Assembly (NCBI GenBank): GCA_964270895.1
Contig: OZ185444.1
DNA length: 64,000 nt
Source of the DNA: Podarcis filfolensis
Taxonomy: Eukaryota
Reading direction: 5' to 3' (one strand)
The position numbers and the translations under genes are program-made. The notes under the pieces are model-generated. The model did not search any database. It was not told where the DNA came from and saw only the letters and a list, made by a program, of their open reading frames with translations. Below, piece by piece: positions 2,960 to 29,698 of the stretch (the first letter of the stretch is position 1; each line of letters opens with the position of its first letter).

Positions 2960-4950
2960 TACATAAGCTAAATAAAGTAAAAAAGGTACAGTATTTATAA
3001 AATGTGTCCTGATCTGTTGATTATTTTCCAAGAGCACCACTGACTTTGAGGCAAAGCTAACTAAGTGTTCCTTTTCTGCACCCTCTAGATGTTTTTCAAA
3101 TGTTTAGCGGCATATCAGCAGTTGCCAGTGCTTGGTAACCGGCACTGCTTTGCATAGCAAGACAGACAGCAATGTTAACAGCAACTCAAAGATACCCCCT
3201 ACTGGCAAAACGGAGCTTCCTTGTGGAAATATAAAATATATAAAAATATATAATATAAATATATATAAAAATATAAAAGCTCTGGATATTGCTTTTATAA
3301 TTATCTTCTTATTTTTAAGTGCATGTGCACGGATGTTTCCATTCCAGCTATTTTTCTGGGGAGTGGCTGCTGTGAGTTTGGAACTGGCATCTTTTGTTAC
3401 TACTGCTGTATAAGGATGCATGTACAAATGGTTCATTCTCATCCCTTCCTGCTAAATATTCACACTTCGATATAGCTTGGTAAGCTTTCCAGACACGGCC
3501 ATTTTCAGTTATTTTAGCACGGAGTACATAGGATCATGTTGTAAATCTGCTAAGGACAGAGCAATAGAAAACTTCTGATTATCTGTGTATGCACATACTA
3601 TTTTCCTAGCAGATTTAACTCTCCTAGTTTTGTTTTGTTTTCTGTTAACACAACAGTGTCTCACTGCAGAATATGTGCTTGAACACTAATTAGAGGCATT
3701 GTGTATCTCACTAAATGCTGCTGCGCAACTCTCATGCGTACCTTGCGATTTTCAGACTTTCTCCTTTCAGTCCTGAGTCATATCTAGCATTCTCACCATT
3801 TTCTGTAGCATTTTCAGTGCTCTGGAAAGCACAAGCACTTTGCTCAAGAACACGAAATACCAACCCAAAGCAAGTAACAGAGTGCAGCTGAAGAGCAGGC
3901 CACTTCATCAAACCAACCCAAACACTTCTCTTAGCAGCAGGCAGTAGAAGCTGGCAAAATCCTGAGGTAGTTCCATAGTAAACATTGCCTAATAATAATA
4001 ATATTTGCACCCCTACCATCTGAGTTGCCCCAGCCACTAAGTAGCCTAGGAAGGCCTGAACAATTACTTTCCTGTGACATGCAAAAAGCTCTCCTCTACT
4101 GACAAACACTCTAAAATGGATAAACTGTTCTTTTCTTTTCTTTTACACAGTCATTAACATTTTCCTGTCGTTTCACACCTCATAGTACTATTTTGATGTT
4201 ATTGTTCTTTGTTCTATTGTTTCATTGGTTTCTGCAGTCCAGATTCGAAAAGCCTAAGACTGATTTTAAGGGGGGCAAATCTCTCCCAGAAAGAGCAGGC
4301 TGGATAAGGTTTTGCTCAAGTGTGCACATTTTCATCAGTTGGACTGACTAGAGAAACTAGGGTTCAAATCCCAATGAAACTCACTGGGTAACCCTGGGCC
4401 AGTCATTGCCTCTCTGCCTAACCTACCTTGTTGTTGTTGATTATTAGATTTCTGTACCACCCTTTATCAAAAGCTCCCAGGGCAGTAGACAACATTAAAA
4501 ACATCTTTTAAGGAACATAATAATAATAATAGCATAATAATAAAGAGCATAATAATAAAATAATCATAACAGTCGTCGTCGTCCCCTTAAATAGACCATA
4601 GATTATTTAATGGCTGAAGGTCTGGGTAAAGAGGAATGCGTTTTCCTGGCGCATAAAGACATGTAATGGAGCCAGGCGATTCTCTCTGCAAAGAGCATTC
4701 CACAGATGGGGAGCCACCACACAAAAGGCCCGTTCTCATGTTGCCACCCTCCAAAATACCGGGCAGGGTTCAAGGATCCTTTCAATTGCAGCAAATTAAA
4801 TTAATGCCACCTGCCCTCCACAATGAGGGGTGGGGATGGAAAGAAAGGCAAACATGGAACTTTACCTCATGCCCTTTTGCAGGATTCCTGTACCTTTAAA
4901 AGCCTGATAATGACAAGACTCCCATCCTGACAATGTGGAGTCTCTTCAGG
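2960..4950 (-). pseudogene. BBS10: Decayed BBS10 (chaperonin-like BBSome assembly factor), exon 2 relic
   Basis: Minus-strand translations in shifting frames match recalled human BBS10 in the correct order: FLSI (4835-4846); IQP (4297-4305); WTAETNETI ~ WIMEKTKAI; NIKIVL*GVKRQENV ~ NVKLLISSVKQPDLV; ECLSVEE ~ ECLSSEE (4091-4111); FCQ...HS...LEQ...[fs]ALKML ~ FCK...HS...IEQ...ALKML; SVLPVGGIFELLL[fs]HCCLSCYAKQC ~ [24 protein letters not shown]. It sits downstream of OSBPL8 on the same strand, as in human. Confidence 0.88.
4345..4785. mobile_element. tRNA-derived SINE fragment plus L2-type LINE 3' fragment inserted in the BBS10 relic
   Basis: 4345-4440 has SINE-like GGTTCAAATCCC...CTGGGCCAGTC...CCTAACCTACCT. 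4440-4785 reads on the minus strand as an L2 3' end (GGGCCTTTTGTGTGGTGGCTCCCCATCTGTGGAATGCTCT) with an (AAT)n/(TTA)n tail. Confidence 0.7.
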
Positions 4951-5081
4951 ATTTGCACCCCAGGCCTTTGCTTTGAAAGCCTGCTGGTTGGATAGCAGCA
5001 CTGCAGCACTTGGGTTGAAAAATGGTGGGAGCACTGGTGATTTATTGCAAATATTATTACTATTTCTTAGTATTATATATG

Positions 5082-5485
5082 CAGTGCTTTTTTCTAAAAA
5101 AATAATAATGTTTAGGGGTACTTTCATTTTGACTCAAGAAAACCACCATTTTATAGTTCAAATCAGGGAAAATAAATACAGTAAATGGGCAAAAGTACAA
5201 AGAACATGCATTACTCATATTGAAATATTGCCCTCAATGAGGCCAAACTTTCATCAATAAATCATCACACATCCACATTCCACACTGCTTCACACATTAA
5301 ATGCTTGCTTCCGTCTGAGACTCAGGAAACACCATGACAGGGAATGAGGCGGTCATCGGGGGTAGCAATGGAAGTGACGATTCACTGTGCTAAAGAAACG
5401 AAAATTTCAAGAGTTTCTTCTCCTGTTAAGTCACAAAACGTTTAGAGGTATGCACCCCTCTGCGTCCCCCCAGGAAAAAGCACTG
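5082..5485 (-). mobile_element. hAT-type MITE (longer member of the 1985-2127 family)
   Basis: TIRs CAGTGCTTTTT / AAAAAGCACTG. Flanks TATATATG / TATATGTT share TATATG. Confidence 0.75.
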
Positions 5486-6629
5486 TATATGTTTCTCTGA
5501 CCATTATTGTTTTAATATTATGTAAAATGACGCTATAATCAAATGCTATGGGTTTGTTTTTGGAGGCTGTATTAAATTTTACATAATTTAAAAAATGATT
5601 AGTATTATATGTTTCTCATCATATAACAGCAAGCAAAGAGGTGTTTGCAATGTTAGTAATGATTTACTTTCTTGTATAAGAATAGCATGACTTTTTTGGC
5701 AGAGTACTCCTCAGGGATCCAATTTGTTACAAAGGTTGGTTGTTATTATTTACTGTACTGCTGTTATAAAAAACTGAATAAAAATAATTACTTTTAAAGA
5801 AAAGAAGCAGCAGCCAGGTCGGAGTACTACATTTCCAAATTGCCTATCCTTCAACCTTTTTACAACAAACCAGGCTCTTGAGCTTCCACGCTGTCGTCTT
5901 CCAGCCCAATTAATTTCTGTTCCAGGGGCCGCTGAGGAGGTGGGCAAGATGGCGCCATTATCTCCAAGCACTGCACTGAAGAACTGGAACTTCTAACGCT
6001 GGCCTTTTGTTTTCCCCTCGACCCCTCGAGGTACCTATTGCATCCACGTTGGGAGGCTTTGAAATGGTTCTGCTGAAAAATTAAAAAGCATATAATGGGC
6101 CAGAATGGTCTTATTTGCAATGGGGGGCCATTTGCTTTGGAACAGGTATGGGCCAGCTTTTGGGGGCTAGTGGGGACATTTCAAGTTTTGAGACTGTTGT
6201 GGGCTCCAGTCACAAAATGGCATGGCTCGATGCAACATGGCTGCCCAGAAGGAAGGCATGGCACAACGTAGAATGAGAGAGTACGTGGCTGAAGCTTCAC
6301 CGATAATTGTGCTTCCATATCAGAAAAGGCTTAATCTGTTGAATTTCTGCCTGGCACACAGCTCTTAAAGGCACGAGAACCCCGTTTTCACCAATTATCA
6401 ACCCTAAACTAAAGCGTGGCTTAGTGACTAATTCACGTAGGGGTGCACAAAGAGGAGAGGTCTAATGAAGAGAAATATTTCACTGTAGCTTTTCAGTTTT
6501 TATATGAATGTGCAGTAGCAGGGTTTTTTTAACTCAATATTTTAACTTTGAATTATAAATGAGTCTTCTCAAGAGTAGCAACGACTTTTAGGTGCTGGTT
6601 TCAGCCATACAAAACAACTCAAGTGTACT

Positions 6630-10785: not shown

Positions 10786-10921
10786 CTATTTAAACCAGTA
10801 ATTGATTGCAAGCTGCAGGAGAATCATCAGTAAAATGAAGACATAGTGCTTGAAGTTAAAGAAGTTATTATCTGGAGTCTGTGAGCTTGAAGTCATTCTG
10901 GTTCTTAGAGCTGTGATGTCT
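10786..10921 (-). CDS. OSBPL8: OSBPL8 coding exon 23 (last; TM anchor)
   Basis: DITALRTRMTSSSQTPDNNFFNFKHYVFILLMILLQLAINYWFK*. Acceptor TTTTTGCAG, phase 2, 136 nt. Confidence 0.95.
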
Positions 10922-13326: not shown

Positions 13327-13638
13327 CTGTGGGCAACAGAGAATGGACACAGTACAAGTTAAGTAAGTCTATTCAAAAAGAGAAAAAAATAATAATCCTG
13401 TTTCTTTTCAAAATGCAAGGTACTAGCATTTCATGAAGAAGATCAAGACTGGAATATGCATCTTGTCTGATCTGGAGGGTCATTTCATCTAAAGGAAAGC
13501 ATTATCTGATATATCTGCATGAAGGATCATATTACCAGTCAGACTATATACCACAGCCAAGTATGTAGTATGTGACAAGCTGTTTCAAAATTGTTTGCTA
13601 GTATCCCAAGTAGAAAGGGAAAGCAAACCAAAACTTAC

Positions 13639-13824
13639 TCTGCATATCTGTAGTTCCATTCCCCTGTGAGTGGATCTGGCTCAAACAGTTTGCATACCCA
13701 CTCTTCATCTGCAAGTTTCCTTTCTTTGGCAGCCTTTCTCTGTGCTTCTTCAAGAATACATTTCTCCTGAGTTGCTTCTGATTGGTCTTTGTTATTTATA
13801 GCTCGGGTCACGTGTTGCCAAAGT
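13639..13824 (-). CDS. OSBPL8: OSBPL8 coding exon 19 (ORD)
   Basis: LWQHVTRAINNKDQSEATQEKCILEEAQRKAAKERK...EWNYRYAD, 186 nt. Confidence 0.97.
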
Positions 13825-14107
13825 CTAGCACATACAAGTAATACAACTGTTAAGGATCAGACACTGGTCCAAATATATTCATTGCAAGTTTATTTCTGCT
13901 GTATCATCTGAACAAAACTTACAATTACCACATAAGCCTGATTTCAATTTGTTACCTATTTTAGAAATTATTTCTCCAATTTACTCCAACTCAAGTTCCT
14001 GTATTTTTTGCTGTACTATGTTTTTCACCCTCCACCCTTCCTGCTTCTAGCCATTAGATGCTTGCTATGTATTAATCTATAAGAAAACAGGTTTAATATG
14101 AACTTAC

Positions 14108-14244
14108 TTCTCTGACTCAAAGTCACCTTGCTCCTCAAACTTCACTGTGTATCTTCTCAATCTGCGCTGTCTGATCTCAGGTGTTGGATTCCAGAATGTC
14201 TCTGAAACATCTGTCTTTTTGTCCCTAATAATAACTTCACTGTC
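14108..14244 (-). CDS. OSBPL8: OSBPL8 coding exon 18 (ORD)
   Basis: DSEVIIRDKKTDVSETFWNPTPEIRQRRLRRYTVKFEEQGDFESEK, 137 nt. Confidence 0.97.
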
Positions 14245-14738
14245 CTGTAATGTTTAACATATTAGATTACTTTGTAGTCAAAGAGTAAACAATCTTACAA
14301 AGTCAATAAGAACAAAGACTTCCTTCAGAAAGTCACTTTTTGCAACCATGAGGTTTGTTCTGCCAGTTTGGCATACGTGGTTGGGGACAATTTAAAGTCA
14401 AATCTGAAAATAGATCTCTTATTTCAGCAAGAGGAACTTGATTTAAGGGAACCTGATTTACTTTCAGTCAGGTTTTGACCTCAGATGCAGTACTTCTGCA
14501 AAACTTTTTGCTACCAATGGAATCTAGAAAACAAAGAATCTGAGGTGGAAGTTCAAATTCTTGAAAGGCCTCTGAAAAGGTACAATAAATATTTGATCTG
14601 AACAGCAATTAGGGTAATCAAAGGGGGATTGGAGGGGGGAATGTGCTATTCTTAACAGCATTATGTACCAATAATTCAATGAATGTAAGAGAAATTTGAA
14701 AGGGCTACCCAACAATTGAAAATAAACATGCTACTCAC

Positions 14739-14828
14739 CCAGTGGCCTTCCAGAGTAGCTAGCACTTCTTTTCCAAGCTTAATTTTCCCCATTATCTGAT
14801 TAACACTGTCATTGCTGCCCAAAAATGG
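14739..14828 (-). CDS. OSBPL8: OSBPL8 coding exon 17 (ORD)
   Basis: PFLGSNDSVNQIMGKIKLGKEVLATLEGHW, 90 nt. Confidence 0.97.
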
Positions 14829-16071
14829 CTATTAAAGAAAAAAGATTACAGCTTGATAATGCTGTATAGAACTTTATAAGATAATGTCTCAGTTAACACA
14901 TTGCATTATGCCAATATTTTAAAACAAATGATGGGTTTAACGTAAAAGTTCCCATAGTGCTCCTTCCTTACACCTATTGTGCTGCAGATGAAGTAAGCCA
15001 AAGGGAGGCTTGCCATGTCTTCTGACCCAGGCACGTGGTTTGTTTATTCCCAAATCATGAGCGGAAACCAATATTTGTTCTACTGCTTGTGGTTTGTTTG
15101 GTGAGAAACCAAAAGCTCATGTTCAGAGGACACAACAAGTCAGATTCTGGCATGTTTGGTCTGCAGAAAATGACAGCAGTAGGAGAGAAGTTCTTTGGGA
15201 ACTTCTGAGCAGTGTGCACCAGCACGCTGCTCATTCACATCAATGTACTGTTTATTTAAAGTAGGTTTTGTGTGACAAGCAAATTAGGCTACTAAAAGCT
15301 GCTAAGAGGTTTCTGAAATGTCAGCCTAATGTATTTCAAAGATAATGTCTGTCATCATTCCCCCAGAACTAAGTAGAATCAAATACTGAACTCTTCTTTC
15401 ATTCCTTGAGAGATATCCGAAGAAAATTATCCACAAAGAAAAATTATGCTGGAAGTGCACAGAACACATCATGACTAGAGCAACTAATAACTATGGCACT
15501 ATATCTGAGCTACAGACGTATTAAATTTACTACTTTATTTTTATTTAAATCAGTGCTGGGGGGAATCTATGGCCTCTGGATGCTGTTGGACTACGATTCC
15601 CATAATCCCTAGTGTCCAACACCATTTGGGAGGCAGCAGGTTCCCCATCTCTGGGTAAAACGAATGGATTAATATAAAAGTCTTGTTTTTCTGCATAGTT
15701 TCTAAATAAATGTTATGAACTATTCTACTGATTAATAAATACAGCTAACTTTGGGTCAGATTTTTTTTTTAAATACAAAGAGTGATTTTTTTGTCCAAAA
15801 CTGTAATATGCTTAAGGTTGTGCGGTTTACTGAGAAATACGTCTCACTTAGTTCAATAGGTAAGTGTGAAAAGAATTACAAGGTACTGGAGGGTTTATTA
15901 TGATGATTATCACCATCACCACTAATATTCAAAGGTTGTTTCCAGCATTTCAAAAATAAACTAGGCCAGTAAAAGAGGTCTCATTTCCTCTGCAGAACCA
16001 AAAGAATGAATGCACTACTCTGTATTTTCTAACGCTAAATCCTCTTGTGCCTATAAACAGGTTTAACTAAC

Positions 16072-16169
16072 CTTTAGCTTGAATTCAAGTGCTGCACTGT
16101 ATCCAGTTTTTTCACATGTGATGCTAACAGTTCCTCCAAGCTCTAAAGTCATTGTGCCATACAGAATTC
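16072..16169 (-). CDS. OSBPL8: OSBPL8 coding exon 16 (ORD)
   Basis: GILYGTMTLELGGTVSITCEKTGYSAALEFKLK, 98 nt. Confidence 0.97.
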
Positions 16170-17318
16170 CTGTTAAGAAAGAACTCATTTTAATTCTAAT
16201 TCTGTTACAAAGTTACCTCCATTTTGTACTTCCATTTCTACCTAAGGTATAATGAAAGATGGTATATTAAAGCCCATGCCTTTTGTTACATTCCAAGAAA
16301 AAATAACTGACGGCAAGATGGATAACAAGAGGAAAAATCCACCAACATGGCTAATCCTTTTCTTTAAAAAGCCACTGTCTATCAAAGGCTCATAAGCCCT
16401 CAAGCAACAAACAAAGTCAGCAGAAATCTTCAGCTGGTTAAATTCAAAAATACTTAAATCCTCACCGGAAGACATTACTTATTGGAAGTAATTATTTAGA
16501 AGACACTATTTATTCTACTGCTTTATCTTCACTGCAGAAATTCAGATTGTTTATAAGTTCAAATATGCATAACTACTGTGTGATAACCAACAGCACCATA
16601 TACGGAGTAACTCTGCTGATTTTAATGAGTCTGCTCTGAGTGTGACCAATGTTTGCTATCATTCACTGTATGTAGCACTGTGTCCTTCATTGTCCTGTTC
16701 TTAGGTATACAGAGAACGCCCTCCAAATGTCCCAGTGCTGTGCAAAGCTCAGTATGACCTACAGCTATCAATTTCTCTCCCCTTGGAGACTCACAACCCT
16801 AATCTTCTTTTAGAAATGATGCAAACTATCTGTTCTTTCACAGAGAGGGCTCACTTTTGCATTGAGTAGGAGGGTTTTAGCATATTTTAAGTTCCATCTA
16901 TCATGTATACCCCATTATTCAATCTTACATGAAATAAAGGACACTGCTGAATGAAGAAGTGGCCTTTGTGCAGCACAACTAAATATTTATTGAAGGATTT
17001 TTGCAGACAGAATGTGTCTGCCAAATTAGGGAAGGACCAAATTCCCACAAAAAAATGATTTTTTGTGTGAAAATTGGGTCATACTCTAGTCCATGATTTC
17101 TCACGGGCCAAAACAAGCAACAGTTACTTTTTAGCAATCCTTTTTCTCCCTGAGTTATGGTTATGAGCAAAAGAAGAAACAGTAGTCATTTCTTCTCCAG
17201 TTTCTTCACTTAATCACACCTCCATACAAGTCGGCCCAGACTTTGTCTCATTCTCAAGCTACCTGTGCTTGCCAGAAGTAAGTACCGTAGGCTGGATTAG
17301 CCAAACTGGTATTTTTAC

Positions 17319-17417
17319 CTTTACAATGTGCATATGGCATGGTCATTACATATTCCTCTCCTCTGTTTAGGAACAGCAGCCGTCCTTCACCATCAAGAAT
17401 GGCAGATAATGAATTTC
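17319..17417 (-). CDS. OSBPL8: OSBPL8 coding exon 15 (ORD)
   Basis: GNSLSAILDGEGRLLFLNRGEEYVMTMPYAHCK, 99 nt. Confidence 0.97.
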
Positions 17418-17670
17418 CTGAAAGACAATAAAATGTTAAGATTCAAAGAAGCACATCCAGAGAGTGTACAAGACTAAATAGTGTCCTCACAGAAAATTCT
17501 GTAGACTAATATTAATTTAAAAGAACTATGGCACTCTTTTTTGTGGAGAGAAAGCTATTTCAATTCATTTTTATCACTGCATTCATCAAATTCTTATTAT
17601 TTAACACACTTTCATCATTAAAAATAGGCACATTTTTGTAGACACTGAAAAAACTAACCCAAGATCTTAC

Positions 17671-17767
17671 CATAAAATTTGGATTTGGCCAAGATATTAC
17701 CACTAAGGCAAAATCCATCCTTTCGATTGCTTACATAGAAGGCAGATATTGGAGGATGATGAGATAC
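17671..17767 (-). CDS. OSBPL8: OSBPL8 coding exon 14 (ORD signature)
   Basis: VSHHPPISAFYVSNRKDGFCLSGNILAKSKFY, 97 nt. Completes the EQVSHHPP fingerprint. Confidence 0.98.
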
Positions 17768-18497
17768 CTGTTGAAAGCAACATAATTCAATATAAGCAGG
17801 TGAGTTGCTCTGAAAATCTGTGGCAACAAGCAAAGGGTGCAGAAAAATTATTTTTTGGAATCCTAATCACTAGGCAAGTGGATGTAATTTACCAAATTTG
17901 CAGCTACACACCAAGTATTATTGAAGATACTTGTGCAAAAACATGACATCAACATAATTAAACTAACGAACTAACCAGAAACCTGCAGTAGTTATGACTG
18001 CTGATAACTGGCTTATTGTTAAAGAGAAAGTAATAGTTACAAATGAGTCAAACTGAGATACACATGTACATACCTCACTATTGCATTTCAGGCACCAGTT
18101 TTACTACTAGACAGAGCCACCATCTTTTCTTAAAAATTACTTATTATTTTGCCCTTAAATTAGCATTCCACTCATAAACTCTAGTCTGTTGTGGAGAACC
18201 CATCAAACTTGAGATACTCAAACATATATCCCAAAAGAATATTTACACATGGGCTAGAAAATTTGAGAACTGTAACATGTTATTCTTAATTAAGGTGGGA
18301 AGTACAAACAAGTCATATCCAAATATAGAGAACCGTTCTCAAACTTCACAAGTCAGTTCTCAAGTGAGTTGATTGCGCATGTCCTGCATATAGACACATA
18401 TATCACCACAACGCTTGCCTTCAGATTATCAAACTTTGTGAAACAAGTTTATGGGTTTCAAAACATCACCTAGCGTATCAGAAAGAACCTCAAATTT

Positions 18498-18952
18498 TGT
18501 TAGAATTCCCGGCTCCATGATTGCAGTCATGGGATTTTTGTCTTTCACATGACAGTATATGTTTTGACTCCACAGAGTGGGAAGTGACGGAGACAGGATG
18601 TTTGTGTTACTGTGTTCCATGAAGTGGGACTATTGCCCTTTGTTCTTTTTCTCTTTGTTGTCTGATGCTAGAGAGAGAGGGAGCCATGTTGCAGTCCTCC
18701 GTGTGTGTTGATATGTAAATAAAGTAGATTAGCCAACATGCTAAGTTGCTGAGGTCTGTCACACGCATGATGCGCAAACTCTGCGGATCCCTAAGTGCGC
18801 TGGTTGGCATCGGTCGCTGTGATGTTCGGGCAGAAGAAAGCTTTTGAAGCTCCCGAACGATCGACCAGGAGGGAGGGAACATGCCAGTCGGGCATGTGTC
18901 TCTGCCAGGGTCCTACTCGAGTGTAGGCTGAACTCCTGACAACTCCTCAACA
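18498..18952 (+). mobile_element. Solo LTR (probable)
   Basis: 455-bp CpG-retaining block with TGTT...AACA termini and an internal AATAAA (~18718). No internal retroviral ORF. No clean TSD seen. Confidence 0.6.
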
Positions 18953-19458
18953 AAGACTTAGGATGATGTTGGCTAAGAGATTCCTGCTGACATTTGAAGG
19001 AGATCTCCACAGTGTCACATGGAGTATTTTGGAATCAATGCCATCAGCAATGGAATCTGTCTAATCTGTGCAGTTAAGATTCTTTTGGAAAATATGTTTA
19101 ATGTATATCCCAAGTCTTATGGGTCTTCCACCCTAAAAATTGCAGTCCTGTACACCTTTGTATGAAAGATTTATATGATCTGAAGAGAAACCAGTCACTT
19201 GTCCTTTTGGTGTTTCCTTCAACATAGGAAAGAGCCCTAGGCCTAAAATAGTAAGAACCGTAATCTAACCAATATCCCTAAAACAGGAAAGGAAAGAAGG
19301 AAAAATGAAACATGCTAAAATAGAAGTGTTATGGTTCTATTATGCCAAGCTCTCCTCTGGTCATCTTCATTTATTTGATGACACTGTAAAGAAATACAAA
19401 ACTTGAAGAAATGCTGTTAGTTATAAAATAATAATAATTGTTACATCTTTGGCAATAC

Positions 19459-19557
19459 CTGTTCAGCTATATAGTAAGTCTTGCTATTTGTTCTTGGATG
19501 AACCCACAAGCAACGGAAGGTCTCACCAAGGATAGGGTTGTAGGGTTTTTTAAGTCC
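19459..19557 (-). CDS. OSBPL8: OSBPL8 coding exon 13 (ORD)
   Basis: GLKKPYNPILGETFRCLWVHPRTNSKTYYIAEQ, 99 nt. Confidence 0.98.
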
Positions 19558-19904
19558 CTGAAAAGAGAGACAATTTTTGCTAAGAAAATACATTCCAACT
19601 GTAAAAAGAAGGGCCTAATAGTTTTCAATTCGTAAGTATTTAAAGGAAAGCCCTATGGTGACATTCTCTCTCAGGATAAGCTAAGGTAAATTTCATATTT
19701 GTAGGGCATATAGAGGCACAGCAACTATGGAAATGTATTTCTGTGACTCACATTACATTTTATTAAACCAGTCCAGTAGTCAAATCACTAGAGAACGCTG
19801 CCTGCCAACTTTGCACTGTAGTACCGCAGTGCTCACATCAAAAGCAGAAGAGACAGCACTGTGTGTTTATTTGACCAAATACTAGTTAAGTATTTGATTG
19901 ACTG

Positions 19905-20105
19905 CATTTTTAATCCACATTTCCTCCAAGGAGCTCGAAGTGGTATGCATGGTCCCTCTCCCCATATTATTATCACAACATCCCTGTGAGGTAGGTTAGG
20001 CAAAGACACTGTGGCTGGCCCAAGGTCACCAGTGAGCTTCATGGCTGAGTGGAGCTTTGAATCCTGGTCTCCCATGTCTCATTTCAACACAGTGCCATGC
20101 CAACT
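19905..20105 (-). mobile_element. Squamate tRNA-derived SINE
   Basis: Reverse complement contains GGGAGACCAGGATTCAAAGCTCCACTCAGCCATGAAGCTCACTGGTGACCTTGGGCCAG...CCTAACCTACCTCACAGGG, a CORE/Squam-type SINE body. Confidence 0.7.
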
Positions 20106-20855
20106 CTCCATATGGCATGTATTTCACAGGGACCTTTGCCATAGCTGCTATTTGGTGTCTGAGGAGTCAGTCAACCAGACATAGAGATGACTGATTACGA
20201 GTGTTTAGGGAGAAAAAATAATGTGCAAAAAGTATGCCTTTCTTAACACAGAGGACTATATGTACTGATTGCTGTATATTAGTTGTGCTAGCAGAATGGT
20301 TTGTGCAGGAGGATAGAAAGCCAGGATGGTTCTCGAAGGTAGTTGTGCAACAGACTGCTGAAGCCCTGATACTTTTTGATGTACAACTTGCTGCACAACA
20401 AGCTACTGCTAACACAACTATTGTGCTAGATTTTACACTGCACAACCATTATTCTCACCCTTAAGCTCCCACAAGAGCTGTCACTATTTTGGGGCTGAGG
20501 GTAAAACTGACCAACGGCCCACCCTCCAGAAGCCACATGGCATAGTGAGCCAAAAGTGTTTATGGTCACAGAAGACCTTTATAATTAAATTAAAATTTTA
20601 ATTCAGGAAGGTGAAGAGTGGCAGAAAAGGGCCCTCTTTAACCCACCCTGCCTGCTACAGATATAACCAACAAACACCATGATTAAAGCCACCACCCTAC
20701 CATCCTACAGGCTTATTATACTAGTATCCAGAAATATCCTTCATGAGTATATAGGCAAATTTTGATCTGCACCAAAGTGTATGGGGGTGGGGGCAAGGAA
20801 AAAGAGTGAAAGGGGAAGGGATCTGCTACCATAAAAAGTGTTTGGAAAGTGTTAC

Positions 20856-20937
20856 CTTTGGCTTTTTGTAGAATCCTGACAAATACCATTTCACAACTTG
20901 TTTCATACGATTGTAAGCATTCTCTTCAAGGGCAGCT
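20856..20937 (-). CDS. OSBPL8: OSBPL8 coding exon 12
   Basis: AALEENAYNRMKQVVKWYLSGFYKKPK, 82 nt. Confidence 0.97.
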
Positions 20938-21662
20938 CTAGAAAACAAGATTTGTTAGGCAAATCTAAGTACTTTTTTGGACACAGTCTTTATTTTAATT
21001 AAATAACAATGTACAATAAAATTTGAAACTATTAACATGTGAATAGAGTAAAAAGCAGATCTTGTCTGCACACAATATAGAGCAGTGTACAAAAGTGTGA
21101 ATAAGAACTAATTCAAATGCAAGATGGAAATACAATTAAAGCCAGTAAATATATATAACAAGGCAGAAGACAAAACAAATTAAAACTAAAAAAAATATCT
21201 CGTGTACAAACTAGAAATAATAACAACGCTAAAATGCCTGAGCAAATAAGAAAGCCTTCTCAAAACACTGAAAAACTTGCTGTTTGAAGTCCTTTAGAAA
21301 GAAATTCTAAAGTCAGGGCAAAGTCTAGAGCATAAAAGGCCCTCTACCTTGTAAAAACCATAATGAACCCCTAACTAAAGGCAGTACTTGGATCAGCACC
21401 TTTCTTGCTGCTCTCAAGACGTGGGCAGGTTGGTGTGGGAACAGACACTCCTTCAGATACATGAATCCCAAGGTGCTTAGGACTTTAAAGGTAAGCCCCA
21501 CAAAAGAAGGGAAAATTCCAGGGGCTAGAAGTATGATTTATTGCAGGCCTGACATGTTTTACAACTTATTAAGAAAGCAATGTTAAAAAATGCTTCTGAA
21601 AACAAAATACTGAGCGGATACATCAAGTTAGTTTTTATTGTAGAGGAATGAAATCAACTCAC

Positions 21663-21847
21663 TCAGATAAGAAGTCTGCATGATAGTAGTAATCAGAGAG
21701 TTTATCCAAGAAAGAACGAGTTTCCAAAATAAACGTGGGCAGCACCACCTTGGAGAGGTCCATTCCTGGGCGGACTTGTTTTAGTAATGTCCATATCAAG
21801 CTTTTGTTCTCTTCTGATACTGTTTCTGTTTGGGAAGCTTCTCCTGC
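21663..21847 (-). CDS. OSBPL8: OSBPL8 coding exon 11 (ORD lid/start)
   Basis: [62 protein letters not shown], 185 nt. Confidence 0.98.
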
Positions 21848-22773
21848 CTTCAACAACAACAAAGCAGAATAGAACATAAACATGATACTAATTGAAAGAG
21901 CACATTTGCAGAAGGTATTTGGTTTCAGTCACTGTGGTTCAAAACTGCCATTGCCTTCTCTATGACGTGGGGTGAATTCATATTTATTTTGCATTGGTCA
22001 GAGCCCATGTTTGTTAGTAAACTTGCTTTACCCACCCATCAAAAATACATAATGCTGCAGAGGACAACTTAAGAGAAAGCACTCCAATTGACTCAACTTT
22101 GGGCAATTTATTCCTAAGCAGTTTTGCTTTTTTAAATTAAAACCCGGAGCCTGCAACCCTGAATGAGCAAGGGCCAAAATATAACATGTGAAGCAATTCA
22201 CATGCTGCACTTGGGAAACGTAAACTATTTTTTAAAAAACACCGAACAGCTATTTATCAAACCAAGGCTAGATAACCTGCAACACACTACAACTTCCAAC
22301 TCAACCATGAGATTCAAAATTTCTGTTTCACCTTGATTAATGCCCTTGGGCATGTCCTCGCTGCTGTTATCCGTTGTCAATCTAGAATAATCTCTGTTTA
22401 CCTTTGGGTCGGTTCAGGTGAATGGCTGGCTCTTAGTGTTTTGATTTGTCAAGTTATTTCTAAATCTGCATCAACTTTAGCCAGCCATAGTCCCTTGGCC
22501 AAATCCTACCAGTTTCTTTTGCTTTTTATGGTGGCCTCTTATGCTTAGATATGCTTTAAAAATTAAGCAACCAAAGCAATTAATCTACCAATGGTCTGAA
22601 AATTGACCTACAGCTAGAGGGACATTAGACAAGAAAGTGTGTGTTAAAAAGGCAAAGGAAACCATTTTGCAATTCAAATGTTGCCAAACTGACTGCCTTT
22701 CCAAGGTACAATTTTAGTTTCAAAACCTTAAAACCAAAACATTACTACTGCATAAAAACACTTTTTTTTTAAC

Positions 22774-22999
22774 CTCTCCAAGCTCTTCATGAACTTCTTC
22801 CAAATACGTTGTTTCCTTGATATGATCAGGTTCAGGGTCAATGTACGAGTCATCCTGCCGCTCAGATGTGTCAGTGTCACTTTCTCCCAAGCCATCATTA
22901 TCCGATTCATCGCGATCATGATCATTTTCCCTATCTGATTTATCAGAATACAGATCTGGATCTTTGAAGTGATGCCTTTCCATTTCACTATCATTTAGC
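22774..22999 (-). CDS. OSBPL8: OSBPL8 coding exon 10 (acidic linker)
   Basis: LNDSEMERHHFKDPDLYSDKSD...ETTYLEEVHEELGE, 226 nt. Confidence 0.97.
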
Positions 23000-23878
23000 C
23001 TAAAAAAAGAAGAGATAGGTTTCAATCCTTTATACAATTTAGCAACTCAACTCACCTTATGGCTTTTGAGTGGTCAGTTCAGTAAACATTAGGCACAATA
23101 AAGTCAAATTTAAGCACTTTTCAGTCTCACTTAATGGAAAAATTAAAAGCATATTTAAATGAGTGGGACATAGGAACACTTACATCTGGCTGGGATCTAT
23201 CCTAAGTTTTAATTTATGCAACTTCAATTCCTAACCTTTTTTCATATGGTTTTACCTCTGTTTATACTATAGCATCAATACTTTATCACTAACCAAGTAA
23301 CTATGCTTAGAAAAAGAACTGCAATTACTACAGCTTAGACTGCAATTGTATGTTTTTCCTTAGGTTTTATAACAGACCTTACCCCATAGACTCAGAGAAA
23401 CAATCCATACTTTCCATTTTAGCTGTTTAAAATACATTTACACATACACAGGTAGTGATCAAATTAAGAATGTATTAAGCTTGCCAATTAAAATTGTAGA
23501 TAACATTTTAGTATTAAAATATATGGCTTTTCTTGCAAAATACATCAATATGAGTTAATACAGAAATGTTTGTACAGCTACAACACTGTAAATAAAGAAA
23601 TCATTGCAATAATTTATCTTTGAATTGAGTGCTACAGTCACAGTGTGGGGTCTTTGAGCAGTTCAAGCCACTGGTAAGTACCAGCATTGTGACTCACAGC
23701 TAACTCAACCAATCACCGCTCTGTAGTTTGTTGCTCCTGCAGTTGTATTGAGTGACTGAAACATAACAAGTGAGCTGAAGAGGAGTAGTAGGTGTGTGGC
23801 AATAGTTTCTATTTGTAGCTGTTTCATAACTTCTGGCAAAACAATAGCAAACCAGTTCCATATCATAATGAATGTTTA

Positions 23879-24200
23879 CTACAGGTGCAAACCCTATTCC
23901 AGAACTGGTGGTACTCAGCTATTTAAATGTCTTTGGGAGGGAGAAGATTACAAGCAGCTCCCCATTTATGCACGTTCAATATGTGTCCAACTGTGTATAT
24001 GGAAGTGTATATGGAACTATGTATATGGAAGTGACCAGGAAACATCATAAAGACATCACTGAAATTTCACTAAAAAAGCAGGGCAGGGGGCAGAATGGGG
24101 TGTTTGCAGGCTTTTCCAATGGCTTTCAAATATACACGATTTCACCAACGTGTGTGATGCCTCGGAACGTAACCCCTGTGTAAACTGGGGGCTACCTGTA
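23879..24200. mobile_element. Tc1/mariner (Tigger-like) MITE remnant
   Basis: Ends TACAGGT...ACCTGTA with TA dinucleotides. Contains an internal (GTATATGGAA)x3 repeat. Confidence 0.45.
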
Positions 24201-25226
24201 TAGCCTCAAGGTATGGTGGAAATGGCCAGGAAATTCTATTTCCTAGGTCCCTCTACAAGTCAGCTCTATAATATTGATAATTGGGGGTTTTTGGGGTTTT
24301 TTTTAAAGGAAATCATTATTGTGTTAGCAGGGAACAGTAAAAAAGAATTGTAACATTGGTGAAGGGTGCAGGGCCGGAGGCGGCTTTTAAGTCATTCATT
24401 TGCCCATTTACCTTGTCTACATGGACCCTCTAGCAGTGTTAGAAACTGAGATATGGAAGCACCTTAAACCTGGCTTATGGGCGCAACAACGGAATGTCTA
24501 GGCACATTTTTAAAAAATTAAAATACAAAGCTGAAAATGAATGAACTGCAGCTAAAATATTGTGTTCATTTTTCACATGGTCTTGTCCTTCCCCTGCCCC
24601 TAATATTCTTAAGAGGATCTCTTCTCCAGTCTTCAGAGGGTAGCTGGAAGTGGGCCCTCCTTTCCTATCACTCTGCAGTTTTAATCCGAAATCTTAGGCG
24701 CAGTACTGCACCCAGAGCTCAGAAACTGCTTGCGCATTAATGAACTTCCCCGTCACAAAATGTGCCCAGAACAATGGGAGTTGCGAACACTGCCCTCTAG
24801 GATAGGTCTTCACCAGCCTATGAGAAGAATATGAGGCGGGTGTAAAAGAAAAAGGGAAGGATGAAAACGTCTCTTCCCTCCATCTTATGTCCTTCCACAA
24901 CCATAAACTAGCACATATATGAACACAATTGCATCCTTAAGCATATCTGTACTCAACAGGTTAACATGTGAATATATAAAGAAACTAAAAAGTTACTTTT
25001 AGATACCATTATTTTCATACAATGTGCCTTTTGTGTGCTTATTTAAAAATTCTAGTGATATTTTCAGTAAGTATGGCAAGCAGCAGTTTTGCCAAGACAG
25101 TGAAAAAAGTAACCAATAAAAGAAAACATTGGAAAACTATTTAAACGACAGTAAGAATTTAACCTTGGAATAGGCTTCATGACCCCCCCCCCACCACAAT
25201 AAAGGCTGTAAATCTGAACAACTTAC

Positions 25227-25395
25227 GGGAAGCTTTCACTACTATGCACGTTGTTTGCACGTAGCAGACCATAGAAAGACACGTGTGCACCATCTGTTAA
25301 GGTCACTTCATGCTCTTTACCTTCTCTAATCATTGTGCGCTTGAGCAAACCTGAACACTTCAAAGCCAGCTCCAATGCATCCATCCAACACCTAC
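25227..25395 (-). CDS. OSBPL8: OSBPL8 coding exon 9 (end of PH domain)
   Basis: GRCWMDALELALKCSGLLKRTMIREGKEHEVTLTDGAHVSFYGLLRANNVHSSESF, 169 nt. Confidence 0.97.
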
Positions 25396-25579
25396 CTAAA
25401 AATACATATTTTGGTTAGTATAATACCCCATGTAATTGAGTACACCATTTGAACAGTATGCTAGATCTGCATTTCATATGGATGTACCTTTAAAGCACAG
25501 AACTAGGATTTTGTATCTGACCTCTTAAGACCAGAAATGATTATCTGTGCTCTTTCAACACATAGCCAGATTCCAACTA

Positions 25580-26068
25580 CCGTATTTTTCGCCCTATAGG
25601 GTGCACCGGCCCATAGAGCGCACCTAGTTTTTTTTGGGGGGGGGATAGAGAAAAAAAATTTTCCCCCAGGCGTGGGGCTGGGACGGGGGAAGCCCGAGCT
25701 TCCCCCGACCCCTGCCCCCAGAACAGGCTGCTATCCGCAAGCCTAGGGAGCCCGGCGGGAAGTCGCGCCGGTCTCCCCAGGCTTGCGGATATCTGCCCGA
25801 AGCCCGGGGCGCGCTCTGCTGCGCTTCCCGGGTTTCGGGCTGCAGGCTGCTGTCCGCAAGCCTTGGGAGCCCGGCGGGAAGTCGCACTGGGCTCCCAAGG
25901 CTTGCGGATAGCTTCCTGAAGCCTGGAGAGCGAGAGGGGTTGGTGCGCACCGACCCCTCCCGCTCTCCAGGCTTCAGCGAAAGCCTGCATTCACCCCATA
26001 GGACGCACACACATTTCCCCTTCATTTTTGGAGGGGAAAAATTGCGTCCTATAGGGCGAAAAATACGG
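25580..26068. mobile_element. Young Tc1/mariner-superfamily MITE with internal hairpin repeats
   Basis: 21-bp perfect TIR CCGTATTTTTCGCCCTATAGG. TA TSD at 25578-79 and 26069-70. CpG-rich interior with two ~68-bp repeat units. Confidence 0.9.
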
Positions 26069-26669
26069 TATATTTTTGGTTAAGTCTCATTTACTTCAAT
26101 AGGACATGTTTTTATTCACGTATGTTTGGGACTGCAGCACTAGTAGCTTCTGATATACTGGGGGGGGGAGGCACTGAACTTTGGTCTGTATCCAAAAAAG
26201 TCTTTCCTCGTTAGCACAAGGAGTTCCTCTCCCTCTTCTCTTTCTGCAAATCCCCCCAATCTGTTCTCAAGGTTCCCCCCCCCCAAAAAAAACCCCCTAT
26301 GGAGCAGAGGTGGGGAAAAGGAAGTCTCGTTGCAAAGGCAGGAGTCTGAATATATAGCCACAGAATCAATGAGTCATGTACATTCGACCAGCTGTGCCTT
26401 ATAAGTCTTATAAGGCTGAAGTCTTCTGCAGGGAAGCTGTACCTATATTGCACTATCTTTGTATTACCTAGCTCTGGTTTTCATATTTTTTAATCCACAT
26501 TTATCTTACTGTGAATATTTTGAGAAAAAAAAATCTGGGGACAAAAAACATCTGGGCTACACACGGTGTTGCTGGTAAAAAAATATTTCCTGAAACTGTT
26601 TAATCACATTAGGATTTACTGTGTTGCCCTTCGCAGAAAATGTTATTGACAGAATGTGCTTTTATTTAC

Positions 26670-26754
26670 CATCTGATTCTGAAGCTGCTCGGATGATCAA
26701 GTAGCTGCTGGGTAATGGTTGTGTTATGGATCCAACAGCTTCACCTTTAGGACC
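26670..26754 (-). CDS. OSBPL8: OSBPL8 coding exon 8 (PH)
   Basis: GPKGEAVGSITQPLPSSYLIIRAASESD, 85 nt. Confidence 0.97.
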
Positions 26755-28339
26755 CTTAAAATACAAACAATATAGATGCAAGAGATTTAGATTAAATTTG
26801 AAGGCACAATTTTAATAAAATATCTAGGATTCTCTGTCAATCAGCAATTGCTATTGCAATAACTATGTGACCAATGGTCATACTTCACTGGAATCTGCTC
26901 TTCAGATTAATTTAAAAAATATCTCCTATTTTGGATCCCCCTCCTCCTCTTAAAAGATCTTTAGAACTAAAATTTCCAGGTGCTTCTCACACTCACTCCT
27001 GTATTATTATTTTTCTAAGAAAAAAACATTATAGAGGCCAAAATATTGGTGGCATTAAAAACTCTGATTACTCATTCATGTTGGGGTGGGAAGCAAGAAA
27101 GAAATGACAGCAAGAATACATTTAAGCAGAACATGCAGCTGGCGAAGAAGAAAGGCACAGCCAACACCATCTGTACGCTTCCTTTCTTCAATCACTGTTG
27201 AGAAATTGGAAGGTAGCTCAGCTACAAGAAAAACGTCTGGAGAGTTGGAATGATCCTCATTTGAAGCTCATGGACTCCCAAATGTGTGTAGATAAACAGG
27301 AGGGGGTGGACAGAGGACACTACAACTTAGTACATAAGAAGAGTCTGCTGGATCTCCCAACAACTTCTCGTCTGGCAGTGGAGGTGGAACATAGCCATCA
27401 TGTAGCTATTGACAGTCTTCTCAATTAATTAATTTATTTAATCTTCATTAGAAACCATCTAAATTGATGACCATCACTTCCTCCTGTAGTAGCGAGTTCC
27501 ATAGTTAACGATACGCTGTGTGAAGAAGTCAACCTTTCCTCACAAGGGAGCTGCCCCATACAACCGCCCAAACATTTTGGTTGGGTTTACTGGTTAGCAT
27601 TCAGAATATTCAGTAGCAGAGCCAAAAGGCATAGAAGTTATACTGCCTCATGTATCAAGAGATCCAAACATCATTAAGTGTAATTATGGATTATCACAAG
27701 AGATCCATCCACAAATGGACTGGGCCCTTTTTGGCTGTCTTGGGGATGAAAGTACATGTAATTCAGGTGATGCCTTTGTTCCTAATATCCAGGGCTGATT
27801 TCTGCTGCTAACCCATTTTAAGTGGACTCTAGGTGGGGTATGGAGGCACAACATAAGACCAATAAAAAGTAACAAACAGGAACTTAAAACAGCAAAGTAA
27901 AAATGTGGCAATTTTTGATGTTTTAAAAGAGAATCTTCCCAATACAATTTTAAAGCACAAATCATTAAAAAGCCTGAGAGAATGAAAAAATATTATCCTA
28001 ATGCCTACAAGATAATAAAATAGGTACCATTAGGGATTCAGGCGCTGTTACACAGCATTACTGTGCACATTTTGTATGGGCAAAGATTATGATTAGTGGC
28101 TGCTTTCACAATAAAGACCACACAGGATTATGCAGAGGGCCAATACTTCTCCAATGCAACCACACTGCTCAGGGCTTTGGTATGTCAGAAAATCAAGCAA
28201 ATTTAGCAAAGGGATAGCTGAGCTGACAACTGAAAGCACACTGAGATCATTAATATTTAACAGTGCAGATAGGTTTAATGTGTCATTGGTGTAATGTTCT
28301 ATTCAACGCCACCTGCATTAAGAATACATATTCACTTAC

Positions 28340-28543
28340 CTTAACAGCCCAGATGGATTGCTCCAAAGGATGGAAAAGTTTGAAACAAAATCCATCCTTT
28401 TTTGAAGGCCGCTCAATGAGTTCACAAGCGTTCAGAAGTACTGTTCCCACCCACTGGCCGTTTTTGGGAGTTTTGTAAATAAGCAGTACTCCAGGTTTCA
28501 ACACACACCAAAGTTTGGTCCAGCTTTTCAGTGTACCTCGAAT
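28340..28543 (-). CDS. OSBPL8: OSBPL8 coding exon 7 (PH)
   Basis: IRGTLKSWTKLWCVLKPGVLLIYKTPKNGQWVGTVLLNACELIERPSKKDGFCFKLFHPLEQSIWAVK, 204 nt. Confidence 0.98.
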
Positions 28544-29698
28544 CTTAACAGAAAAAAGAGACTTTTAATTGTAAGTACATTTTTAAGTACATTTCAGTCC
28601 CAATCCCTCCTGGCTAAGCAGTAAGACCCTTCTTACAATATACACAACCAGTTCAGAATTGCAAAAATGAAGAAGAGTTATTCAAATCTCACACAAATAC
28701 TTATAGGCACAACACATCTTAATGTTTGTATACTGGTAATTGAGTGTAACTAGTAAATCAAATTACCAAAGGATATCAACTGCACCATGCAGACAGTATT
28801 CCTTTAAAATGAAAACTAATTTACTATGTCAGACGTTATTTTACATATGTAAATAAATACAGAAACTTGAGATGATTCCCATGCCTGCAGAATATGTCTC
28901 AACTGACACCAGTAGAACCTACTGGTTAGGGAATGTACTTGAAATATGAAATGCAGGTTCAAATCCCTAATCAGAAACAAAGATCACTTTGTAGCCTTGA
29001 ACAAATCACACTCTCTCAACCTAATTTAACTTTCATGGGTTTGTGAGGATAAAACATTGCCTTTGAGAAGAGCAGGATACAAATGTAATCAATCAATGAA
29101 AAAAAGTAGTATGTTAACAGCCCTTACACTTTAGCCAATACAGTAAAACAAGGTACAAACAACAAGTTCAGGTGGAATATTTTATTGATCAGCAGAAGTA
29201 ATTTAATTCTCCTGTGACGTGCAAGAAACACACTGACATTAAGCAGCTTAGATTATTTGATACCCGTGCTACTTTTACGTCCTCTTCCTGGAGCTATTCA
29301 TATCATCATTGAAATTCACACATTTGAAACTCCCAGAGCTTTAGGCTATCATGTATGAAATGTGGCTTGGTGAGTCTGCAAGAAGGAATCTGTTTTAAAG
29401 TAACAGTTTCCTGTTTCCAGAGGAATCACTCATAATTCACATTGTATTGAATATAAAGTGATCACCAATTCAATTAGTCACTGCAGACAGATGTAGCCAT
29501 GGCAACCACTGTAAAGCAGTGGCAAGGTGTCCCCGTTGGTTCCCTATGCATCAAGTACTGAGCCTCTGGGATATAATTAATGGAGATTTTTCTAGTGGTA
29601 AACATCAATCAGCAACCAACTAGGATCTGAATTCTTTTACATTCTGACAAATAAACAACAGCTACAACTTTCACTCAATATTACACATAATTCCTGAC

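Follow-up and report, generated by a model that had tools for sequence, protein, structure and literature searches.

Results

OSBPL8 and the sequence downstream of it

BBS10 (Bardet-Biedl syndrome 10) is a chaperonin-like protein derived from CCT8. In the stretch of 64 kb analysed here (the window), which contains no N and has the appearance of vertebrate DNA, the minus strand at ∼4210-3139 carries a series of short open pieces that resemble BBS10, with the reading frame changing between pieces. Exons of OSBPL8 (ORP8) are situated upstream of this relic on the same strand, at 13638..28564 (Table 1), and an exon that encodes a hydrophobic tail and ends near 10789 is probably the last coding one. 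In the human genome, BBS10 is the next gene beyond the 3′ end of OSBPL8. PMC2846930 places it at 12q21.2 with minus-strand orientation, and in cattle the two genes fall within one 1-Mb window (PMC6097312). Given that OSBPL8 is verified upstream and on the same strand, the relic occupies the ancestral BBS10 locus. A processed (retro-) pseudogene was considered and rejected, as the relic has kept the place of its parent gene beside OSBPL8 and is followed by no poly-A tract.

OSBPL8 fills most of the window (13638-36431, minus strand). One of its introns contains, at 25724-25977, GC-rich palindromic units placed back to back, with arms of 31-83 nt that are 81-94% complementary. The open frames of ∼150 aa found there on both strands have no Pfam match, and the segment looks like a hairpin-forming repeat.

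Table 1. Positions of the BBS10 relic, its lesions, the adjoining repeats and the OSBPL8 exons in the window.
Feature	Position	Strand	Description
OSBPL8 PH-domain exon	in 28286-28564	-	68/70 identical to human ORP8 (PDB 1v88, 5u77; E 1.7e-44)
OSBPL8 PH-domain exon, second	26665-26811	-	
OSBPL8 acidic exon	22723-23046	-	
OSBPL8 ORD exons	19444-19614, 17257-17442, 16066-16212, 14107-14253	-	
OSBPL8 'EQVSHHPP' ORD exon	17657-17866	-	Pfam Oxysterol_BP
OSBPL8 ORD exon, end of lipid-binding domain	13638-13856	-	Pfam Oxysterol_BP
Repeat-family sequence	4346..4800		Directly upstream of the relic, at the expected place of the N-terminal half of exon 2
Relic block 0	4147..4209	-	∼Human BBS10 residues 300-320; 17.3 bits, member of the L003 chain; weak alone
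TGA stop	4182-4180	-	In frame within the aligned block 4209-4147
Relic block 1	4070..4129	-	∼Human residues 326-347, apical domain; 'NSLSILECLSVEE..HVTG' vs 'NSISVVECLSCDE..RITG'
Relic block 2	3822..3959	-	∼Human residues 370-413; 'FCQLLLPAAKRSVWVGL...VLEQSACAFQ', begins 'FCQLLL'
1-nt frame shift	3821	-	Block '..SACAFQ' ends at 3822, 'ALKMLQKM' begins at 3820; one extra base
Relic block 3	3779..3820	-	∼Human residues 417-430; 'ALKMLQKMVRMLDM' vs 'AFKMLRQLFKDLDL'; match 3829-3779, 17.3 bits
Spacer	3239..3778	-	Decayed, with length kept but not sequence; counterpart of the BBS10-specific insertion, which is poorly conserved; stops in all frames
AT-rich tandem repeat	3228-3278		Inserted or expanded within the relic; Tandem Repeats Finder: period 25, 2 copies, 95% matches
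Relic block 4a	3176..3238	-	∼Human residues 595-615, C-terminal equatorial domain; 'SSVLPVGGIFELLL'
1-nt frame shift	3175	-	'VLPVGGIFELLL' (…FELLL) ends at 3176, 'HCCLSCYAKQCR' (HCCL..) begins at 3174; one extra base
Relic block 4b	3139..3174	-	'HCCLSCYAKQCR' vs rat 'HFYLLNYAKQCR'; tblastn 66.7% over 12 aa
TGA codon	3096..3098	-	Present after 'ADMPLNI'; surrounding BBS10 alignment not above chance

Similarity of the relic to BBS10

The reference sequences were all mammalian and distant from the sequence of the window. Human, mouse and rat BBS10 were first taken from supplement 22 of PMC2846930, a machine-read text with reading errors, and short rat and mouse blocks from it were the queries of the first alignment tests, including frameshift-aware alignments run on both strands of the window. 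The rat BBS10 C-terminus, used as a query, brought in six mammalian C-terminal fragments and the contigs L001, L002 and L003. L002, a Logan contig, covers the part of BBS10 that runs from 'LNVGVTGLPVSDSR' (human residue ∼221) up to its end. L003, a 5-kb scaffold assembled from an ENA metagenome but evidently of host origin, contains exon 1 together with almost the whole of exon 2; the two are 74% identical. Both references (regions L003:727-933 and L003:1356-3412; L002:1188-1243) have a frame break inside BBS10, in the spacer or just after 'YAKK', which was left unmended, and exon 1 of L003 includes a run of 11 N. A scan of JGI metagenome contigs for BBS10 gave no match.

Chains of collinear tblastn matches (2-letter words) were scored against 200 residue-shuffled references per test. 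For both L002 and L003, the best chain of the whole 64-kb window on either strand was the one at 4209-3139 on the minus strand. The chain against L002 reached 88.2 bits, compared with 52.2 ± 7.4 (maximum 71.9) for shuffled L002, and that against L003 reached 90.8 bits, compared with 57.1 ± 9.3 (maximum 88.2) for shuffled L003; none of the 200 shuffles scored as high in either test. The members of the L002 chain, collinear and consistently spaced on the minus strand, are 3211-3140, 4129-4070, 3959-3840, and 3829-3779, and those of the L003 chain, likewise on the minus strand, are 4209-4147, 4129-4091, 3959-3840, and 3238-3176. Single matches are weak when taken alone (E of 0.05-0.5 within the window), and among the 249 tblastn matches to L002 on both strands, 3211-3140, 4129-4070, and 3959-3840 rank 1, 2, and 8, respectively. 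In the frameshift-aware alignments, a 54-aa rat block, 'AVPAGCVLPVGG…YAKQCR…', found its best place in the window with an end at 3139, scoring 67 against 44.3 ± 3.9 for shuffles (0/100; z = 5.9). The block ending in '…FKMLRQLF' had its best end point at 3779, with 5 of 100 shuffles equally good. Judged by sequence, the minus strand at 4209-3139 is derived from BBS10, its similarity being beyond chance. The first-pass annotation had reported ordered BBS10-like blocks on this strand and had read them as a decayed BBS10 pseudogene at its syntenic locus. Both statements are borne out, the former by the collinear best chains against the two references and the latter by the two 0/200 shuffle tests, the lesions described below, and the OSBPL8 gene upstream.

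The match is also specific within the chaperonin-like proteins. The BBS10-specific motif pair 'VLPVGG.FE' and 'YAK[KQ]C' is present in the relic, 1 nt out of frame, and since MKKS, BBS12, and CCT6 read differently along this stretch (supplement 22 of PMC2846930), the resemblance is to BBS10 itself rather than one shared by all chaperonins. Block 0 pairs 'NIKIVL*GVKR' with the reference 'NIKLLLSTVKQ', the asterisk marking the TGA at 4182-4180. Block 1, whose frame differs from that of block 2, ranks second against L002 (23.5 bits, 50% over 22 aa) and fourth against L003, and sliding reference blocks 81-140 also have their best places there, at 4091/4070. Block 2 ranks first against L003 (26.6 bits, 37.5% over 40 aa) and eighth against L002, and block 4a ranks first against L002 and second against L003 (57% over 21 aa). 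No sliding reference block matches the spacer at 3239..3778. ALKML and VLPVGG lie 609 nt apart, which makes 186 codons after subtraction of the AT repeat, compared with ∼182 codons between the same anchors in human and ∼175 in rat as obtained from line counts of the machine-read text; the spacing is thus kept within a few codons, and the relic has not been rearranged between these anchors. The detectable equivalents cover residues ∼300-625 of the 723 in human BBS10, or ∼40% of the protein. This ∼1.1 kb can still be recognised because it contains those apical and C-terminal equatorial blocks that are conserved best. With the mammalian references, no second BBS10-like sequence was found on either strand of the 64-kb window.

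Searches with pieces of the relic returned little. Seven pieces gave no hit in Pfam, including Cpn60_TCP1, and two pieces gave no match in a PDB sequence search; a word-indexed protein search with two pieces and a protein atlas search with a relic piece were likewise without a match. A phmmer search with a 136-aa piece against 1.84 billion representative proteins produced two repetitive junk proteins only. With a relic so decayed, such a search would reveal a copy only above ∼70% identity to the query piece, and this empty result is therefore weak evidence against an intact copy. A piece of intact mammalian BBS10 itself scores 24.1 bits on the Pfam Cpn60_TCP1 model, against a cut-off of 34.3, and the blank searches are attributable to this sub-cut-off match of BBS10 to its family models together with the decay of the relic.

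Lesions and coding capacity

The lesions within the relic agree for the most part with those of the first-pass annotation. Its two frame shifts, at ∼3821 (AFQ/ALKML) and at 3175 (FELLL/HCCL), were both located and are 1 nt each; its in-frame TGA at 4180-4182 falls within an aligned block, and its AT-rich insert at ∼3225-3280 corresponds to the tandem repeat of Table 1. A further TGA, at 3096-3098, had been called an in-frame stop as well. The codon is there, but the segment 2960-3138 contains no BBS10 match above shuffles, so that its in-frame status is uncertain.

Over 4200-2985 (∼1.2 kb), the three frames contain 15, 27, and 20 stops, 62 in total, and amino-acid identity to the mammalian proteins is 30-60% even in the best blocks. 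The longest open piece of the relic is 136 aa, and no open frame anywhere in the 64-kb window exceeds 159 aa; intact BBS10 consists of a coding exon of ∼650 aa and a short first exon. In view of the 62 stops, the frame shifts, the insertions, and the missing N-terminal half, the relic at 4209-3139 cannot encode a chaperonin-like protein.

Missing parts and flanking repeats

The pseudogene had originally been drawn from 2960 to 4950. Within these limits, 4209-3139 is supported, whereas the flanks at 2960-3138 and 4210-4950 are without BBS10 signal, the latter containing repeat-family sequence. An N-terminal assignment of 'QDGSLVII' near 4929-4906 could not be upheld, as there is no N-terminal signal above chance: neither the mouse GDGAKT N-terminal equatorial block nor exon 1 and the N-terminal part of exon 2 of L003 gave anything above shuffles in the whole window. 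For the beginning of the apical domain and the final ∼100 residues, the best matches lie elsewhere in the window and are at chance level. Two further candidates were discarded. 'GRGANIIII' at 4017-3991 resembles the GDGAKT motif by chance: it stems from an ATT microsatellite, and the match has E = 18 and is in the wrong order. 'LLLCSLKDVFNVVYCPG' at 4526-4476 ranks only 44-148 among the matches to BBS10, and shows a weak in-window repeat match only at 4514-4561; we take it to lie in a SINE tail. A faint match to the part of BBS10 just before and at 'VGVTGLPVSDSRII', the start of the apical domain, was seen on the minus strand at 5343-5441 (40% over 37 aa), although at rank 54 of 166 with L003 it is not significant. 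If real, it would mean that some of the apical domain has survived upstream, ∼1.1 kb away from the relic and beyond the repeat insertions.

The insertions of transposable elements put forward earlier are supported by repeat-family matches with copies in the window at 4346-4428, 4692-4731, and 5078-5492. The first of these has its copy at 20078-19989 (73% over 91 nt) and the second at 39098-39059. The third, which is in three pieces (5078-5130, 5212-5248, and 5431-5492), belongs to one repeat family with 2131-1976, and the two copies flank the relic on either side in opposite orientation. The repeats at 4346..4800, directly upstream of the relic, are presumably SINE-like. Just after the relic, a (CTG)12 microsatellite at 2794-2830 lies within open frames at 2580-2945, of ∼120 aa on the minus and 57 aa on the plus strand, and the plus-strand frame at 2580-2750 has no Pfam match. 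The sequence at 2580-2945 may have overwritten the C-terminal tail of BBS10.

Discussion

Comparison with known systems

The relic shares with mammalian BBS10 the motifs '..SVVECLS..', 'FC.PLIL.SKR.V.LGL', 'A[LF]KML', 'VLPVGG.FE', and 'YAK[KQ]C', with their order and spacing unchanged, as well as position and orientation beside OSBPL8. It differs from the mammalian gene in that no open reading frame, GDGAKT N-terminal equatorial domain, exon 1, or last ∼100 residues can be detected, and in that frame shifts, stops, and insertions occur throughout. A unitary pseudogene is the product of the lineage-specific loss of a conserved single-copy gene, as is the case for GULO in primates. The relic is similar to this class in being a decayed sequence at a conserved syntenic place, with numerous disabling lesions and nothing that would indicate retroposition. 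The class is, however, defined by the absence of other functional copies, and here that absence is seen within 64 kb only. Ciliary genes have been lost in other lineages, WDR93 and CFAP46 in birds being examples to which the reference list of PMC13005343 points.

BBS6, BBS10, and BBS12 help BBS7 onto CCT/TRiC in the first step of BBSome assembly, with BBS10 acting as a regulator of BBS/CCT complex formation and not as a structural member (PMC5534436). PMC9325507 and PMC5534436 describe BBS10 as essential for this step and list it among the two most often mutated Bardet-Biedl genes in western countries. The chaperonin-like BBS genes are nevertheless patchy across eukaryotes (Mukherjee and Brocchieri 2013, as reported in PMC5534436), and lineages that possess a BBSome but lack at least one of BBS6, BBS10, and BBS12 show that assembly is possible without them; in contrast to the present locus, these cases concern deep, non-vertebrate lineages. 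The regulatory, non-structural role of BBS10 and its patchy distribution outside vertebrates make loss or bypass conceivable.

Loss, relocation, and other readings

To judge from its lesions and its location, the ancestral copy of BBS10 beside OSBPL8 is dead, a true pseudogene. The orthologous ancestral gene would have become a unitary pseudogene once it was unneeded or replaced, when selection relaxed and the gene was disabled. Neutral drift would then have added the 1-nt frame shifts, the stops, the expansion of the tandem repeat, and the repeat insertions, and the N-terminal half and the C-terminal tail would have been deleted, overwritten, or decayed beyond recognition, leaving a remnant that itself presumably does nothing. 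If no functional BBS10 remained at all, BBS7 would be loaded onto CCT/TRiC with only BBS6 and BBS12, or along a different route, possibly with compensating changes in BBS6, BBS12, BBS7, or CCT. We consider it fairly probable that the loss is a true one, with the lineage retaining no functional BBS10, and we lean slightly towards the view that BBS10 has disappeared altogether, with no functional copy anywhere, from a tetrapod lineage whose ciliated photoreceptors are normal. No report of BBS10 loss in lizards or within tetrapods was found in the literature searched.

A dead relic would also be left behind if a functional BBS10 were located elsewhere, as a retrocopy, as a DNA-based duplicate on another chromosome, or as a tandem copy past the start of the window, a reading that we regard as possible, if rather unlikely. 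BBS10 function would in that event persist in the species. The relic lies exactly at the place expected of the ortholog and so represents the original copy and not a spare; nothing else in the 64 kb is BBS10-like, and the relic piece has no close relative among the representative proteins. For a relocated copy to take over from its parent is, moreover, much rarer than plain loss. On the other hand, the window ends 3.1 kb beyond the relic, and the importance of BBS10 in mammals and fish, together with its standing as a major human disease gene that acts in the first BBSome step, lowers the prior for complete loss (PMC5534436). BBS10 also goes unmentioned in the text of PMC13005343, a systematic screen of genes missing from squamates, which favours a copy elsewhere and suggests that at least some squamates probably keep the gene and that any loss would be clade-specific.

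All readings other than loss or a copy elsewhere, the two alternatives already posed by the first-pass annotation, are, taken together, improbable. The remnant may have acquired some non-coding function, for instance within a long OSBPL8 3′ transcript or as regulatory DNA, and the 3′ end of OSBPL8 within a few kb would fit such a role; we consider it very unlikely for a sequence so riddled with repeats and drift. Chance similarity, in which case the stretch would never have been BBS10, is suggested by the weakness of each match taken alone (E 0.05-0.5) and by the blank results from Pfam, PDB, the 1.84 billion proteins, and the word-indexed search. Such blanks are to be expected when a piece of intact mammalian BBS10 itself falls below the Pfam cut-off, and four collinear, correctly spaced matches that form the best chain for two references (0/200 each), one block at z = 5.9, and a syntenic location make this reading extremely improbable. 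Single-base shifts of the kind seen at 3821 and 3175 are a typical error of long reads, and the gene might in principle be intact in the animal, the damage being an artefact of assembly or sequencing. We give this next to no credence: 62 stops spread over three frames in 1.2 kb, the 30-60% identity of even the best blocks, the tandem repeat and repeat-family insertions, and the ∼60% of the protein that is undetectable exceed polishing errors by far. The amount of this damage, with more than half of the protein gone, rules out a simple assembly error, in keeping with the argument of the first-pass annotation from drift and the load of transposable elements.

Should the loss of BBS10 be true, nature would have knocked out what is, in humans, the second most common Bardet-Biedl gene, and a healthy vertebrate lineage would show that BBSome assembly can bypass its first step. 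The compensating changes to which such a lineage would point are of relevance to therapy ideas for BBS10 patients. Should a working copy be present elsewhere, the locus would document an ordinary gene relocation and would still hold a warning for its annotation.
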